A stretch of 37,009 nucleotides of DNA. It comes from Guillardia theta CCMP2712 (taxonomy: Eukaryota; Protista; Cryptophyta). The DNA lies in assembly GCF_000315625.1 (NCBI RefSeq), contig NW_005434572.1, positions 40,631 through 77,639 on the forward strand, given 5' to 3'. A program made the position numbers and the translations under genes. Positions 1-8,300 of the stretch are shown one piece after another; positions within the stretch are counted from its first letter, which is position 1; every line of letters starts with the position of its first letter. The notes under the pieces are model-generated. The model had not been told where the DNA came from and did not search any database. It saw only the letters and a list, made by a program, of their open reading frames with translations.

Positions 1-620
1 CAAAAAGTGGGGGTAGTCAAGAGTGCTCCTCACTTTTCACATATCAACGTTGTAAGAGTGGGGGTGGGGTGGGTAGTGAATTCAATAAGATTGAATTCAC
101 TAGGGGGACAGGGGTAGATTAGGTACAATCAGGGGTGATGAAAGTAACAAGTGCTGAGTAGGGTAGGTAGGGTGGTCTTGAAGGACATCTGAGAATGGGG
201 TGGGGTAGTGAACGATTGAGATGCAATCTGTGATTGGGGGGTCATATAAGGGAAAGGGTGGGGTGATCTTGGGGCAAGAAATGGACGTGCTGGAGGAGGG
301 TGGGGTAGTTTTATTTTAGTCCCCAAGTTTTAATTCCGAGGGTCATGACTAGAGAGCCATTGGGAAACGAAAGGGTAGGGGTGGTAGGGGGTAGCGTCAA
401 AAATTTGGGCGATAGGGGTACGGCATTAACTTACAGGGTAGGGGTACTCAAGGAAGTCAGTTGGGTCGGGTGAAACACGACCAGTCTTCCTTGTAACAGA
501 TGTGGGTAGGGGTACTGAAGAAGGGAGGGTAGGGGGTGGTGTGATGTAGGGTGGTGGGGTGGCATTCTTCGAGCAAGGATATGCGACGAGTGCGAGTTGA
601 GGAGATGGTGGGCGAGGGGT
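1..620 (+). repeat. G-run-rich strand-asymmetric low-complexity tract (GGGGTAG/GGGTGGG words)
   Basis: Many ggggtag/ggggtgggg words, no credible ORF; similar texture at ~20510-20547 and ~34010-34190. Confidence 0.6.
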
Positions 621-943
621 CCCTTGCGACATTCAATGGCATCAGCATTCATTCTACCATTTCCTCGCTCGCTGCCTTGACCCCTGGCTCCCTCTAGCGC
701 TCCCACCCATGTTTGCTCGCTCGCTCGCTGGCTTCCTCCCTCGTACGAGCTGGTGGAAATTGCGTGGTAGGGATGAGCGAAGAATCAAGCTTGAGGGCAG
801 TGAAACAAGCGACCATGCATTAGAGTGAATAAGTGAATGAGCGAAAAAGAGAGCAGGGTGCAGACGAGGATAGATCGAGATGGGATCAATGGAGGGAGGG
901 TGCGTCGAACGAGAATCTGACAGGAGAGCTGCAGTAGAGTAGT

Positions 944-972
944 GATGCGATGCGATGCGATGCGATGCGATG
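944..972 (+). repeat. (GATGC)n microsatellite, ~6 copies
   Basis: Directly visible. Confidence 0.95.
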
Positions 973-1468
973 AGACCTGATTGGTCTATGATATGAAGTT
1001 AATGTGAAATGCTACGAGATGGTTCGAGATTCCCAGATGGTGTCTTGCAGTCGTGGTTGATCTTGTGAGAGATTGGAAGTTGGTGACTAAGGAAGAGCAA
1101 GCGACATCACAGTAGTTCGGCATGCGGTGCATGGCAGAAACGTTAGGGTGTGTGCTTGCTGGTCACGCATACGGCGACAAATTTATGCACCACTTTGATA
1201 GCGTGTAGATTTACAAACATGTCCATAATGTGACTTTTGTTTATTCAGAACTACTGGTGGCCTTGTCAAGTCAACAAATCAGTTCGAGCTGGCTGGAAGT
1301 GCGAGAACTGATTGCTGCGAAAATCAAGCATGTGCAGAGAAGGTGCTGATCTAGCATAATCTGTTTGAATACCTCAGATTCTGGGAAACTCTCTATCTGG
1401 GGTCATCCTGTATTCAACACAAGAGCTCTCGAACAAGCGGCCTCACCCGATCGGACCGATGCCAGCGC

Positions 1469-4214
1469 TTGATTGTTCTGCTTCAGTTTGAAAACTCGGT
1501 GGTGAACTCGTACAGCTCTGAAACATCTGTTTTCTTCATTCGAAATGGCTGCTGCTGTGGTGGCGTCGAGAGAGGGTTCAATCTTGGACAATTTTCCTAC
1601 AGGCGGCCGACTGTCTACAGTTTGCGATCTGAAACACAGAACAACTTGCCTGAAGCATCGGAGATCGTCAAAGAGAGTTTGCTTTCTAAGCAATCAGCAG
1701 GTACGGTGTGAACAGCCACTTCCCTTTGAGCGTTTACATCTGAAGAGCAATCGCAATGTTCAATTTGACTTGCTCTCACAGGTTTGAGCGGATTATGGCT
1801 TCCAAGAAAAGTGATGGTGTCGGACATGAAACTGTTTGTGTGTGATAATCAGTCGGGAGCTCTGCTCGAAAGCTTCTGGCTTGCGGACATCGTGGACATG
1901 GACGCGCGTCAGATCGTCGAGCGGGAGTGTCATGCCCCGAAGATGTCTCCCCTGCGAGCGTTGCAGTCTATCAAGGACTTGCTGGTCGGGCCCATGGAAC
2001 ACGCGTGCGACGACATCTACGACGACTCCACCCAGCGATCCTTCGCCATCTGCGTCTACAGCAGGAGAGAGAATCAGGTCCGCGCTCTCGCCTTCAAGGC
2101 CAGTAGCCCCCTTGAGCGTGTGGAATGGATTGAGTGCCTGACGGAACTCGTCACGGCTGCTAAGGCGAAGGAGCAACGGGCGCTGTCTAAGTTGGAGTGC
2201 TGGAATGCCAAGGTGAAGAAGGTCTACGACAGCTTCCCGTTCCAACTGTTCGTCATCCTCCTCATCTTCGTCAATTTCGCCTTCAACATTGCGGAGGCTG
2301 AGCTCAACACAGCACCAGACGATCCTCTCAATAATGTGAGTCGAGATTTTGGCTGATATCGATAGTGATAGAGTTGTTGGCAGCTCTTTCAGAACGCAGA
2401 TAATTTCTTCACCATCATCTTCACGGTTGAGGTGAGTCGTTCTTTGTTTGTCGCGTCTCGTCGCTGATTTTCTGTTTTCTGCTTTTCTTTGTTCACTTGG
2501 ACGTCTGCATGTCAAAGCTCGCTATCAACGTGACTGCAAACTGGATTACTCCGTTCCTGATGGATTCATGGAATGTCTTGGATACTTCTGTTGTTGTTGT
2601 CTCCCTGCTATCATTCTACGCCTCCAACATACCGGGAGTGAAGGGGTTCCGTATCCTCCGCGTCCTGAAAGTTGTGAGTGACTTTCGTTGGGACCCATTC
2701 TTGTCCTGTCTAACTGCCGTCAGGTCCGAGTGTTCAAGCGTTTGACGTCTCTCCGGATGATTATTACAGCATTGGCATCCTCCGTCATTCCTGTTGCCAA
2801 CGTGTTTGTCATCCTGTTGCTCGCGAACATGGTCTATGCCATCCTTGGGGTTGGGCTCTTCAGTCAGTCGTCTCCTGACTTCTTTGGAACCTTCTCGCGA
2901 GCTTTCTTCACCATGTTCCAGTGCGTGACAGGAGATGGCTGGGCGAGTTCCGTTGCTCGGCCAATGATGGATCCGCTGGGAGGGTACAGCTCGAGCATAG
3001 CCATCTTCTTCCTGAGCTACATCCTGATCGTCTCATGGATCATCGTCAACGTGGTGCTTGCTGTCCTGCTCGACGAGTTCCTCAAGGCGGCATCCGACGA
3101 GAAGGCTGCCATGCACAGGGAAAAGAACTCAAACTCAGAGTTGAGGCTGCTCTATACCACTCTAGATCCCCTCCTCTCACACCTCTCGCAGTTTCACAGC
3201 ACTGACGACCTTCTCCGGCGCCTCAGCGACCTCTTTCAAGTCCTCGTCGACAACGACGACGAGGTTCTCACGCTGTCAGAGTTTTCGGCTGGCTTGAGGA
3301 AGCTGGCGTTCCGTCCGATTGTGCAGATTGACAGTCATGGGCTCGTCGAGATGATGCGCGTCATGAACTCGCACGGTTCCAACCTGCTCGACGTCGAGCG
3401 CATCGCAGAGGAGGGCATGGACAGGCAGCAGTTCATGCAGTTCATGCGCTTCCACCTCCGCAGATATGTGCAGCGAGTGGTCTCGCGGACGATCGCGCTG
3501 GAGACGCACGAGGACAACGGGACATCTTCGATTCTCTTCATCCTCAAGTACGTTGTGACCGCTCTGGACGAGCTCTCCTACCTCGTTCACACACGAGGGG
3601 AGCCAGCAGCTACCAGGACGATGTCGGACAAGGAGCGGGGAGGCGCTCACGGCCCTCACTCGCAGCCCTCCCCAGAAGCATCAGCCCTAGAGGCGACAAT
3701 TCGTGGAGAGATCGACGAGTCTGGGGTGGAGCTGTCAGAGAAGACAGGAGCAAGGATGAGCGACCAGGCGCGGGGGATGCTAGAGGAAGTGGACTGTGAG
3801 TTTGTGGTGGAGAAGTTGGAGCGAGGTGGAGTGCTGGAGGCGGCAGACGTCGAGGCGCTCCGGAACGACGAGGAGCACTTCGACGACGTCATGGACAGGT
3901 GCGGGGTGACGAGGAGGGAATCGAAGCAACTATGGAAGGCTCTCCGCGATCACAGGCGTACTAATGGAGTGCGGAAACGCCTGCAGGAGGAAGAGGAGGA
4001 GGAGGGGAAGAGGCAGATCCCGGTGGTGGCTCCGGAGTACAGTGACAGGCGTTTTCCCCAAGCGAAGTCGGAGGGCAAGCAGCACGAGCTCCCTCCTTCG
4101 CTGCTGCCCGGTTTCAACGGTTTGATCAGGTCTGACTTCTCCCTGGGATGGAAGGCGAGAGCGATGGAGCTTGCTCAAGCTCGTCGAAGACTGGAGGCTC
4201 GCTTCTCTCCTTGA
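1469..4214 (+). CDS. Single-domain (6TM) voltage-gated cation channel with N-terminal PH domain and C-terminal EF-hand-like/SAM-like regions; spliced, 5' end uncertain (possible further exons ~1050-1460)
   Basis: GT-AG introns 1701-1781, 2335-2383, 2432-2517 and 2674-2722 join the ORFs in frame. PH: IVKESLLSKQSAGLSGLWLPRKVMV...LAFKASSPLERVEWIECL. S1 FQLFVILLIFVNF; S2 NFFTIIFTVELAI; S3 DSWNVLDTSVVVVS; S4 KGFRILRVLKVVRVFKRL; S5 FVILLLANMVYAILGVGLF; pore FFTMFQCVTGDGW; S6 IIVNVVLAVLLDEF. Confidence 0.9.
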
Positions 4215-5306
4215 CTTCACTCCTCTCCTTCACTTCGCTTCACCTCTGTACATCTCTTCGCTTCTTCACTTCGATTCTAAGTTTTTCCTCGCCTCTTGTA
4301 CTTGCGATGCTTCTGTGAAGGTTCTAATAATCAATTTTCAATGCTCTACTTGTCTCTGCGACAGTTGTGAATGCTTCGATGCTGCCAGGCTCTCTTCCTC
4401 CTGTCGCCCAACTTTGACTTCACACGGTTCGGTTCCATCCGCTCGGTGACTCTGTGAGGGCGTAAAAAGTGTTTATACGACCAAAGGAAGAATACCCAAT
4501 CACCCCGGGCCGGGCTCAGTGACTCAGTGCACCCGGTCCCCCCCGGCGATCGGACGGTCATTTGCCAATCATGAATGATTGCTTGACTCACTGAGTGACC
4601 GTCTGAGTCCGGCGTACCCCCGGCGTCCGACGATCGTCGGGCTCGGAATACCCGGTGTTCGGTTGCAGCGGCGCCGCTGCGGCCGCTGACTGAGGCTGCT
4701 GAGTCCGATCCGATGGTCCGACGGCCGCCCGGAAGTTTCTCAGTCACACGGAACTTGGGAATTCAGAGTCACGTCGGAAGGCCCGGGCCCGGGCCGCCAG
4801 TTTGACGGTCAATTCCCTAGTAGTGGGCTGGCACGGCGGCGGCGGGGCCCAGGCACCTCGGGCCAGCGCCCCCGGCGTACTGCGCGCCGGCCGCCCCCCC
4901 GGGCGCCCGTGACTGCCATCCGTGCCAGCGGCGTGACCGGCGGACTGAGCCGCGGCGGCAAGGGGGGCCCGCCGGCCTCCCCTGTGACATTACGTATGAC
5001 ATTACGTTCCCTCCGTGTGACTCCCGCGCCCGGGCCGCGCGCGGCCCGCCGCCCCCGGGGGGCCGGCGGCGGGGGTCAGTGACCACGGTATCGGACGACC
5101 GTGCGCGTGGCCGGTACTACCGCCCCCGTGACTGAGCGGACTGGGACTCGGAGTCCGAAGGCTCACTGGGCAGGCTCGCAGTGGCAGGTGAGGTTCCGAG
5201 CCACAAAGCCGCGGCGGCCCGCCGGCCCCCCCGCCCCCCGTGCCAGTAAGTTACTCGTGAGTATCCGGGACAGTATCCGATAATTATCCGGAACGGTATC
5301 CGCGCC

Positions 5307-5321: not shown

Positions 5322-8300
5322 ATGGGGAAAGTGTCGAAGGCAACGAAGAGGTTCAGCCAGAAGCGGCTGAGCGATGAGCTCAAGGCGAGGAAGATGAGGA
5401 AGAAGATCAACTACAGAGAGAAGAAGAAGTGGGGCGCGAGAAAGTCTCCTCAAGAGCTGGAGGCTGAAAGGAAGGGAAAGAGCGAGGAGGAGGAGGAGGA
5501 GGAGGAGGAGGAGGAGAGCCAGGAGGTGTCGAAGGAAAAGGTCCAAAGCAAGAAAGGAGACGATTATGATAAAGACGTTGAAGACTTCCTCGAGAAAGGA
5601 TTTTTTGAGGCTCTTGAGGAGGAAGAGCCATCTGAGGCAGAGAGCGATGGCGAGGAGGGCGAAGGGGAGGACGAGGACGAGGGCGAAGGGGAGGACGACG
5701 ATCTCTCAGACACAGATGCGATCTCGAAGCACAAGCAGGACCTTGAGAGACTGAAAGTGGAGCAGCCAGAATTCTACAAGTACCTCCAGGAGAACGATAA
5801 GGACTTGCTCAACTTTGACGACTCAGAGGACGAGGGGGGGGATGAAGGTCAGCAGGCTGAGGCCGGCAAGGAGGAGGGAGAGGACGAGGACGACGGGGTC
5901 CAGATCCTCACATTGCAGACTTTGGACAGGTGGAACAGGTCGCTGCTGGGAGGAGAATCTTTCAAGGGGCTCCGCGATCTGATCAGAGCGTTTGAAAGCG
6001 CATGCAACGTGGAGGATGTGGTCGATACCAAGGGTAAGGATGCGGAGGCTGTCGAACGGGCCAAGAACAAGTTCAAGTTTCGAATCGTCAGCGCACAAGT
6101 CTTCGAGCGGCTGATGCGCATGTGCCTGACGAAGATGCACATTTACTTGAGCCTCTACCTGAAGCTGAAGCCCTCGGAGGAAGGAGGAGCAGCCAAGAAA
6201 GCGAATCCTCAGTCAAGTGACAGATGGAAGCGAATTTCCCTCCCCATCAAAGCGTGAGAGACACTTGCAGGTCAAGTCCCAGCGGGTGTCTGACCACTCG
6301 TGGCAGGTACGTCAAGAGCATGGTAAACTTCCTCGAGACGCTGACGGACCCAACTATGACGCATCTGCTCCTCCGACATGCTGAGAGGCTGCTGGCCTAC
6401 ATCCGGTGCTCCTGCTTCTTTCTTCTCTTGTCCAGCTGACCTCCAGCTTGTGAAGCCCTTTCCCCAAGATCGCCAGGAAGCTGCTGAAGCTTTCCCTCCA
6501 AGTCTTCGGGAGCGTCGAGAGCAACCGCGTTCAGGCATTCTTCCTGGTCCGCCGGCTGGCAGTGGAGATGCCCTACCCCTTCATCGACGGCTGCTACAAG
6601 GGGCTCTACCTCACCTACGTGCGACACTGCAAGTTCACCAACCTCAACGTCATCGAGGGGCAGGTAACGAGCGACCTGGAGGGGATGGGGGAAGGGGGAA
6701 AGCTGAAGGGAGATGTGAGCGTAGGACACGAAAGTGCAAGGGGAGAGAGGAGCTGAGAGGAGCTGAGAGGAGCTGAGAGGAGCTGAGAGGAGCTGAGAGG
6801 AGCTGAGAGGAGCTGAGAGGAGCTGAGAGGAAGGGAGCAGGAGACGGAGAGGAACATGGCAGGCGGGTTCTGACTTGTTGCCAAGGCTTTCATGGCTCAA
6901 TGTGTCGTTGAACTCTTCGGGCTGGACAAGAACATTGCCTACGAGCATTCCTTTGTCTACATCCGCCAGATGGCCATCCAGCTCCGCTCAGCTATCACAA
7001 CCTCTGCCTCCAAGAGTGCCGGTTCCCTTCCCATCCTTTCCTGCGTCTCTTGTGCTCCTGCTCCTGCTCCTGCTCCTTCTCATGCTACTGCCACTGCTTT
7101 CGCTGCCGCTCTAGCTGCTGCTGCCGTTGCTCTCCCTCACCTCTCGCTCTTCGCCTCTGCTTCCTCTTCCTGCTGTAAGGCAAGTCATGAGGCCTGACCG
7201 GAGCTCGCAGACGCTCACAAGGTGATCTCGAGCTGGCAGTACCTCAACTCCCTCAAGCTCTGGGGGAGGATGCTCTCTTCCTACCCCGGCAAGGACGCGC
7301 TGGGCCCCCTCGTCTATCCCCTGGTTCAGATCGCCCTCGGTGTCCTCACCTACCTCAACGCCCCGAAGCATCTCCCGCTCCGCCTGCAGGTCTGCCAGGT
7401 TCTCGTGCGGGTCCAGCGGCACTGCGAGGTTTACATCCCCCTCTCTCCCCACATCCTCGACATCTTCACCAAGCGCGACCTTCACAACACCTCCGTCAAG
7501 GCTGGCTCGCACCCCCACGACTTCCAGGTCGGCATCAAAGTCAGCAAGACGGTCCTGTCCACCCGCCTCTACCAGGAGGCCGCCTTCGAGGAGACGCTCA
7601 AGACTCTGGTGCTGGTCGAGGAGTCGGAGGAAGAGGCTTCCTTACCCCTTCCTGTCAGGTCCTCTTCTACGGCTCCTGCTGCTACAGCCCGTCCTTCCCC
7701 GAGCTCGTCGTTCCCTGCATCATGCAGCTCAGGTTGTTCGCCAAGGCAACGCAGGTCTCGAGGTTTCGCCGTCAGGTCAGCTCCTTCCCTCCTCCCCTCC
7801 TTGTCGCTTCCTCTGTCTCTCCCCTCCTCCCTGCTTTCCCTGTCTCCCTCCTCACTCTCTCGCTTCTCAGGTCAAGGACGTGATCGAGCGTTTCGAGCGC
7901 AACGCCTCCTTCATCGCGAGGTTGAGAAACTCGTCGAGCATCTCGCCCCAGGAAGTTCTTCCTATTAATGCTCTCCAATCCGCCGACCCTCAAGGACAGG
8001 TCGTTCCTCTTCCCCTTCTCCCCCTCCTCCTCCTACCCTTCTTCTCCCTCCCCTCCTCCTCCTCCTCCTCCTCCTCCTCCTTCCCCCCCTTCTTCTCCCT
8101 CCCCTTCTCACTCTCGTTTGCCTACATTGCATCCTCTCCTCTCTTCTTCCCTCCTCTCTCTCATGTCCTGACTCTCCGCCAGGCCCCGCTTCGCTCAGCG
8201 TGGCTGCAGTCGGCGACAATCGGGGGAGACTTGAAGACGCTGATGGAGAAGAGAAACGCCAAGGTGAACCCGCTAAAGGAGGGAGAAGGCCTGACGACTG

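Follow-up and report, generated by a model that had tools for sequence, protein, structure and literature searches.

We analyzed a 37,009-nucleotide stretch of nuclear DNA from the cryptophyte alga Guillardia theta CCMP2712 (referred to below as the window), in which the gene GUITHDRAFT_145375 encodes a PH domain and a predicted one-repeat, six-transmembrane (6TM) voltage-gated channel on one messenger RNA (mRNA), and partly within one exon. Taken as a whole, the observations are best explained, with a probability that we place at roughly 0.6, by an expressed protein of about 801 residues that would form a depolarization-activated, Ca2+-permeable tetramer, with each PH domain tied to acidic lipids of the inner membrane leaflet. 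From its N to its C terminus the predicted product comprises a 41-residue extension, the PH domain, a long link made of the PH C-terminal helix and a short S0 helix, the S1–S4 voltage sensor, the pore, S6, an EF-hand-like pair and a conserved helical tail. We are confident, judging from the sequence, that this product is a voltage-gated channel.

The window, which corresponds to contig C102:40631-77639 of the 87-Mb G. theta assembly, is nuclear DNA from a cryptophyte and not prokaryotic, and its open reading frames (ORFs) must be interpreted one exon at a time. The translated last exon (2724–4211) is 100% identical to the 846-residue protein deposited for GUITHDRAFT_145375 (P0001), which carries the UniRef name ‘PH domain-containing protein’ and the precomputed Pfam domains PH, Ion_trans and PKD_channel. 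From residue 66 onward P0001 follows RNA-supported splicing, and it serves here as the reference for residue numbers; all features of the gene described below lie on the plus strand. Contigs from three transcriptome runs (X1, X2 and X4, each from a different study) were aligned to positions 800–4700. A single contig of 2837 nucleotides covers 1247–4346 while skipping four GT..AG introns, and the other two runs agree with it on the joints. The original prediction had allowed for the PH and channel exons lying on different transcripts; they do not, since this one contig spans both.

The first coding exon (1545–1700, from transcripts and translation) holds the start codon, the 41-residue N-terminal extension and the first PH strand (beta1). 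It is followed by intron 1 (1701–1781, 81 nucleotides), for which contigs of all three runs gave the joint 1697>1779, with the cut shifted three places to the right. Exon 2 (1782–2335), an open frame covered by contigs without a break, encodes PH strands beta2–beta7, the PH C-terminal helix, the S0 helix and S1, and is matched by the Pfam PH profile on its own with 24.3 bits. Since beta2–beta7, the PH C-terminal helix, the linker and S1 all sit in a single reading frame of this one exon, the fusion could not have been created by an error in the gene model. Intron 2 (2336–2383, 48 nucleotides; joint 2335>2384 in all three runs) separates it from exon 3 (2384–2431), which the transcripts define and which encodes the end of the S1–S2 loop and the first half of S2 (LFQNADNFFTIIFTVE). 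Intron 3 (2432–2517, 86 nucleotides) rests on the joint 2429>2516, with the cut moved two places to the right, in runs X1 and X4 and in one raw RNA read of a further run (X17). Exon 4 (2518–2673; Pfam Ion_trans match and transcripts) contributes the remainder of S2, S3 and the first half of S4, and intron 4 (2674–2723, 50 nucleotides; joint 2673>2724 in all three runs) leads into exon 5 (2724–4214). This last exon, an open frame with the identity to P0001 given above, encodes the rest of S4, S5, the pore loop, S6 and a cytosolic tail of approximately 370 residues, and its translation alone matches Ion_trans with 69.3 bits. The TGA stop codon at 4212–4214 agrees with the gene end at 4214 that had been predicted from the letters.

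The PH domain (P0001 residues 87–220; 1667–2149, split by intron 1) was recognized by profile, by structural model and by fold comparison. The Pfam PF00169 score was 26.9 bits for the full protein and rose to 32.4 bits (E 1.4e-7) when the search was restricted to residues 77–243; the cut-off is 25.1 bits. An AlphaFold2 model of the region, made with 23 family sequences, reached a mean predicted local distance difference test (pLDDT) score of 82.3 and shows a seven-strand sandwich with a C-terminal helix; strands were assigned at positions 12–19, 27–34, 38–43, 49–54 (extending to 61), 108–115 and 120–127 of the model numbering, followed by the long C-terminal helix. A 47-residue insertion between beta4 and beta5 is modeled with low confidence. 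When this model was compared with the PDB by Foldseek, all of the top 50 matches were PH domains (probability 1.00, template modeling (TM) score by target up to 0.79), including those of SKAP55, Akt1/3, PDZ-RhoGEF, Btk, ASAP1 and TAPP1. A plain sequence search of the PDB with the PH region returned nothing useful, indicating that the domain is divergent. Its tryptophan (W213) is nevertheless kept in 22 of the 23 family members, and the best-kept PH positions across those members also include R198 and K203 in the beta6/beta7 region. K94, at the end of beta1, is Lys or Arg in 13 of 21 members, and R106 in beta2, which we take to align with the key arginine of lipid-binding PH domains (R25 in Akt), is Lys or Arg in 18 of 22. 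The fold and the profile match bear out the earlier description of a complete PH domain placed directly before S1, except that ‘directly’ is only nearly right: some 28 residues, predicted to form an extension of the PH C-terminal helix and the short S0 helix, lie between the end of the Pfam match (residue 220) and the start of S1 (residue 249).

The channel portion is matched by Ion_trans (PF00520) over residues 249–475 with 127.9 bits (cut-off 25), covering profile positions 2–239 of 241; this nearly full match upholds the assignment to the one-repeat 6TM class. S1 (residues 249–272; 2234–2305) begins where the Ion_trans match begins and corresponds to a helix at positions 184–207 of the full-length model. 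S4 (2641–2756, interrupted by intron 4) carries K340, R343, R346, K349, R352 and K355 at strict i+3 spacing, together with two additional arginines, R356 and R361, so that the intact S4 with a basic residue at every third position was correctly foreseen. The charge-transfer center is likewise intact, with the Phe-x-x-Glu of S2 (FTVE) and the Asp of S3 (WNVLD). With six regularly spaced basic residues in S4 and these S2 and S3 residues in place, the voltage sensor looks fully functional.

Four-repeat Cav and Nav chains head the list of PDB sequence matches only because their score is a sum over all four repeats; taken singly, the best of these repeats reaches 71.9 bits. Of the one-repeat channels, NavEh (7X5V/8J7x) scores highest at 117.6 bits, ahead of a NaChBac chimera (105.9 bits) and of NavAb and CavAb (approximately 96 bits). 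Foldseek searches with the full-length model likewise put NavEh entries first (29–35% identity; NavAb-type entries have 24–27%). NavEh, also known as EhEUKCATB1, is thus the closest one-repeat match by both sequence and fold, and the EukCat papers report that cryptophytes have EukCatBs; we would on these grounds call the channel EukCatB-like. The comparison with EukCat and bacterial Nav channels that had been proposed from the letters is therefore apt, with NavEh/EukCatB being the closest solved structure. No CatSper chain was found among the 60 best PDB sequence matches, and closest kinship to CatSper is not what that search indicates.

The pore loop reads FFTMFQCVTGDGWASSVARPMM, within a family consensus of TMFQxVTGDGWAS, and places the selectivity filter TGDGWAS at residues 419–425 (2928–2948), in which Asp occupies the high-field-strength site and Gly occupies position 4. 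The filter of EhEUKCATB1 (TGESWSE) is Na+-selective, and its E305D mutant conducts Ca2+ and Ba2+ and loses Na+ selectivity; diatom EukCatAs that have Asp at that site, or that lack the adjacent Ser, are non-selective (bioRxiv 10.1101/2020.04.29.068528). In CavMr, a native bacterial Ca2+ channel with the filter TLEGWVD, Gly at position 4 determines Ca2+ selectivity, and the filters of CatSper3 and CatSper4 read TVDGWTD and TQDGWVD, respectively (PMC7041947). The Glu at position 0 and the adjacent Ser that give the coccolithophore EukCatBs (TGESWSE) their Na+ selectivity are both absent from TGDGWAS. Given that the T-G-D-G-W sequence has both the Asp of the high-field site and the Gly of position 4, we are moderately confident that the channel would be Ca2+-permeable rather than Na+-selective.

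Beyond S6, the model contains an EF-hand-like helical pair (full-model residues 433–576; 3165–3596), for which Pfam EF-hand_6 gives a low score of 12.6 bits. It consists of a helix-loop-helix pair (pLDDT of about 88) with short beta bridges, and pLDDT values averaged over blocks are mostly 80–93 up to about residue 540 and lower beyond it. Short beta bridges between helix-loop-helix units are a hallmark of paired EF-hands. A PDB sequence search with the tail that follows S6 gave no match to the EF-like domain of NavEh. Further along, residues 697–780 (3762–4013) form a conserved helical domain (model helices 632–715, pLDDT approximately 79) that is kept in the related cryptophyte Hanusia phi and has no match in Pfam; a SAM domain was considered for these residues and dropped for want of Pfam support. 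The C-terminal 40 residues (4092–4211), the last part of which is predicted to be helical, are identical to those of H. phi at 39 of 40 positions, and the 60 residues before them are poorly conserved between the two species; the C-terminal segment may be an assembly or binding motif. At position 4203, 5 of 32 raw RNA reads of run X17 have G in place of T (Phe to Val in the third-last codon), probably a strain polymorphism.

The gene is, judged by genomic matches, one of a family of about 40 G. theta paralogs that share the PH plus one-repeat channel layout, a very large expansion for so small an algal genome. When the G. theta genome (87-Mb assembly) was searched in all six frames with the PH and channel regions, 105 matching pieces were obtained; a profile of the family PH region alone gave 61. 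At no fewer than 43 genomic places, a PH domain of the same type is followed immediately downstream, on the same strand and at most 3 kb away, by a one-repeat channel match; this count, obtained by combining listed pieces that share a place, is a minimum, and pseudogenes or duplicated scaffolds may account for some of the places. Two pairs of scaffolds (C265/C420 and C166/C292) score identically or nearly so and may each be a duplication in the assembly.

Several paralogs encode the whole layout in a single uninterrupted ORF: two combine PH, Ion_trans and EF-hand matches (L003 and L006), one combines PH and Ion_trans (L012), and another ends in a C2 domain that scores 54 bits (L007; minus strand of G000:C14:420502-424359, ORF 310–2922). 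In a further paralog (L005; minus strand of G000:C1:75616-79506, ORF 91–3198) an EF-hand pair scoring 39.8 bits is inserted inside the PH domain. That insertion occupies the site of the long beta4–beta5 loop, whereas in a metagenomic relative (P0041) the EF-hand pair lies earlier, between beta3 and beta4. Another metagenomic channel (P0047) has a C2 domain directly after S6. Pfam PH is matched by 14 of the 23 family N-termini on their own.

All named relatives are cryptophytes. The H. phi ortholog, which is under purifying selection, is 75% identical over the region from PH to S1 and nearly unchanged in the pore region, and a 607-residue protein of Cryptomonas paramecium has the same layout, with weak PH, Ion_trans and EF-hand matches. 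Many further members come from aquatic metagenomes and are not assigned to a taxon. The ESM Atlas contains Ion_trans clusters of 219 and 65 members, in 12–17% of which Pfam sees a PH domain. An exhaustive profile-free search with exon 2 gave 17 weak matches, mostly fragments of the same family, and in word-indexed protein searches all matches were family members apart from a few four-repeat channels.

The N-terminus of the deposited gene model requires correction. The genome as given has no ATG in the PH frame, and the ATG at 1545 lies in a different frame. All three transcriptome assemblies contain an additional T after position 1591, so that a run of five T residues stands against the genomic run of four (1592–1595). 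With that T included, ATG 1545 translates as MAAAVVASREGSILDNF and leads, in the same frame, through SYRRPTVYSLRSETQNNLPEASEIVKESLLSKQSA to the PH domain; we translated the corrected N-terminus as two pieces (1545–1595 and 1592–1699), which share one frame only if the additional T is present. The deposited model instead uses an upstream start together with ‘introns’ of 19 and 27 nucleotides, which are implausibly small. As the T5 run of the transcripts restores the frame of ATG 1545, this codon is probably the true start, and residues 1–65 of the deposited model are likely to be artefactual, arising from a homopolymer error in the genome assembly. The gene start at 1469 in the original prediction does not survive this correction: it is merely the point at which the frame opens, and 1469–1544 belongs to the 5′ untranslated region (UTR). 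The 5′ UTR as a whole extends over 298 nucleotides (1247–1544; contigs of the three runs begin at 1247 or 1248) and contains two short upstream ORFs, one from ATG 1331 (1331–1357, 8 codons) and one from ATG 1460 (1460–1492, 10 codons). The 3′ UTR occupies 4215–4452, with contig ends falling between 4306 and 4452.

We considered whether the fusion might be an artefact, arising from two merged neighboring genes, or whether the locus might be a pseudogene with a 1-bp frameshift at 1591. The missing in-frame ATG of the genomic PH frame and the tiny introns of the deposited model would fit such an explanation, but exon 2 alone combines S1 with the bulk of the PH domain in an uninterrupted frame, one contig spans the entire gene, and the frame-restoring T occurs in every transcriptome assembly. 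The selective constraint on the ortholog and the dozens of paralogs with the same layout, several of them uninterrupted ORFs, also argue against it, and we regard an artefact or pseudogene as practically excluded. A second alternative concerns conduction and gating: the protein might be a fast Na+-selective channel like EukCatB/NavEh, in which the N-terminal sequence MAAAVVAS...R acts as an inactivation ball, with the PH domain forming part of its chain. No solved structure is closer than NavEh, which inactivates by way of an N-terminal helix that opens with two turns of small or hydrophobic residues and continues with arginines; the corrected N-terminus of the G. theta protein similarly has small or hydrophobic side chains at its first seven positions, before an Arg. 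What follows that single Arg is Glu, however, and not an arginine cluster, and the filter has Asp in place of Glu and no adjacent Ser, a change at the site where the E305D substitution abolishes Na+ selectivity in EhEUKCATB1. The filter and the missing arginine cluster together make a Na+-selective, ball-inactivated channel improbable. Against Ca2+ permeability it must be said that TGDGWAS differs from the filter of every characterized EukCat, and the selectivity is to that extent extrapolated.

The mechanism that we favor would operate as follows. By analogy with related channels, four subunits would form a depolarization-activated cation channel; with some 40 paralogs in the genome, mixed tetramers are possible. 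Each PH domain would hang below the voltage sensor on its helical link and may contact acidic lipids of the inner leaflet (phosphoinositides) through the conserved K94 and R106. Such contact could determine where the channel resides or shift its voltage dependence, and the EF-like domain might add Ca2+ feedback in paralogs with canonical loops. EF-hand and C2 domains are Ca2+- or lipid-binding modules. The original prediction of a tetrameric channel that integrates voltage with lipid or protein signals is plausible on this view. Three features, namely the conservation of K94 and R106, the helical connection of the PH domain to S0/S1 and the repeated acquisition of C2 and EF-hand domains by paralogs, lead us to prefer, tentatively and at somewhat less than even odds, a role for the PH domain in contacting acidic lipids so as to set localization or tune the voltage sensor.

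Several observations weigh against that role or against parts of the larger scheme. The phosphoinositide motif K-Xn-(K/R)-X-R is incomplete (K94...L104-P105-R106), with Leu at the first basic site of its (K/R)-X-R portion, a position that is Lys or Arg in only 4 of 22 family members. The net charge of the PH core is +1, since basic beta1–beta2 and beta5–beta7 segments are offset by acidic beta3–beta4; a core so weakly basic makes high-affinity lipid binding doubtful. The full-length model, a monomer with a mean pLDDT of 74, has a predicted TM score (pTM) of 0.47. The EF-like loop of this protein (3246–3281; VDNDDEVLTLSE) is degenerate, with Val at position 1 and Glu at position 6 (EF-hand_6, 12.6 bits), whereas the corresponding loop of the H. 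phi ortholog is canonical (DHDFDGILTLDE; 19.1 bits) and those of paralogs score approximately 20–23 bits.

In the main rival reading, the PH domain would serve as a protein-interaction or intramolecular gating module that docks on the channel's own EF-hand-like domain or S4–S5/S6 region, or on a partner (a G protein, for example). A model for such an arrangement is provided by KCNH channels, whose N-terminal eag/PAS domain docks on the C-terminal CNBHD. High-affinity lipid binding is the exception among PH domains, and here the lipid motif is incomplete and the core nearly neutral. The PH and EF-like domains are both conserved between G. theta and H. phi, and the paralogs with an EF-hand pair inside the PH domain hint at cooperation between the two modules. 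On the other hand, the canonical pocket residues K94 and R106 are the best-conserved basic PH positions across the family, and the C2 domains added in paralogs are likewise membrane-binding modules. We consider docking, by this analogy, to be the less probable of the two roles, although clearly more plausible than a Na+-selective channel with an inactivation ball, and retain lipid contact as the preferred role.

Comparison with characterized systems places these features in context. NavEh of Emiliania huxleyi (PDB 7X5V, 8J7F and 8J7M) is, like the G. theta protein, a one-repeat 6TM voltage-gated channel from an alga with a red plastid, and the two share the TG-x-x-W frame of the filter; the EF-hand-like domain that follows S6 in NavEh may have its counterpart in the modeled helical pair of the G. 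theta protein. An EF-hand or EF-hand-like domain at the C-terminus is present in EhEUKCATB1/NavEh but not in all EukCatB members. The differences are that NavEh has a 13-residue N-terminal helix where the G. theta channel has its PH domain, a tall extracellular loop between S5 and P1 that is short in the G. theta channel, and the Na+-selective filter TGESWSE in place of TGDGWAS. The bacterial one-repeat channels NavAb, NaChBac, CavAb and CavMr have the same 6TM fold (TM score by target up to 0.82) and very similar pore helices, and CavMr also shares the Gly at filter position 4; they differ in being prokaryotic, in lacking PH and EF-like domains, and in having filter rings of Glu or engineered Asp. 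CatSper1–4 are one-repeat subunits as well, with a TxDGW filter in CatSper3 and CatSper4, but they form an obligate heterotetramer with many auxiliary subunits, are weakly voltage-dependent and have no PH domain.

Two more distant systems offer functional parallels. In KCNH channels (EAG/hERG), a globular cytosolic domain before S1 tunes gating, although it is a PAS domain and the channel conducts K+. In Ci-VSP a voltage sensor is coupled to phosphoinositide chemistry, but the protein lacks a pore, and lipids are what it modifies, not what it senses. The added domains of KCNH and Ci-VSP are not homologous to the PH domain of the G. theta channel.

Elsewhere in the window, positions 1–600, upstream of the gene, are non-coding, G-rich (GC skew +0.40) and dense in words resembling GGGGTAGGG and GGGTGGGGT, and a (GATGC)x5.8 microsatellite lies at 944–972. 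The next gene downstream on the plus strand (5322–6257) is an acidic, Lys/Glu-rich ORF that by eye resembles a nucleolar ribosome-biogenesis protein (NOC2-like).

The combination of PH and Ion_trans is already present in public domain databases as an automatic annotation. In the EukCat papers, the main text of the NavEh structure papers, a diatom channel survey and the results of full-text searches that paired pleckstrin or PH with voltage-gated channels, we found no mention of a PH domain on a voltage-gated channel. A paper on the Phytophthora zoospore proteome in which both PH and Ion_trans occur describes separate proteins and not a fusion. The original prediction knew of no characterized channel with this architecture, and the literature searches likewise found none; the PH-bearing one-repeat channel is visible in databases and, as far as we searched, undescribed in the literature.

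To our knowledge, bacterial Nav channels have no eukaryotic counterparts other than the algal one-repeat EukCats, which have already yielded unexpected biophysics, namely Na+ selectivity and, in NavEh, N-type inactivation. The PH-bearing branch would be a natural system for examining what a lipid-binding module on S1 does to a voltage sensor, and its channels would offer a compact homotetrameric scaffold for structural studies of lipid–voltage coupling; for any cloning of this gene, the wrong N-terminus of the deposited GUITHDRAFT_145375 model has to be corrected beforehand. We also put forward a broader, more speculative proposal, which we think unlikely to hold in every part: that cryptophytes evolved, and expanded to approximately 40 genes per genome, voltage-gated Ca2+-permeable channels in which a PH domain is wired by a helix to the voltage sensor and is, in paralogs, split by EF-hands or joined by C2 domains, such that the tetramer would read voltage, inner-leaflet phosphoinositides and Ca2+ together. 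If true, this joint reading would be a regulatory design that is not known from any Nav/Cav-type channel. Cryptophytes are motile, phototactic and ecologically important algae; the PH-channel family is probably a major component of their excitability toolkit, and the gene described here is the visible tip of this large and unstudied family of cryptophyte channels.

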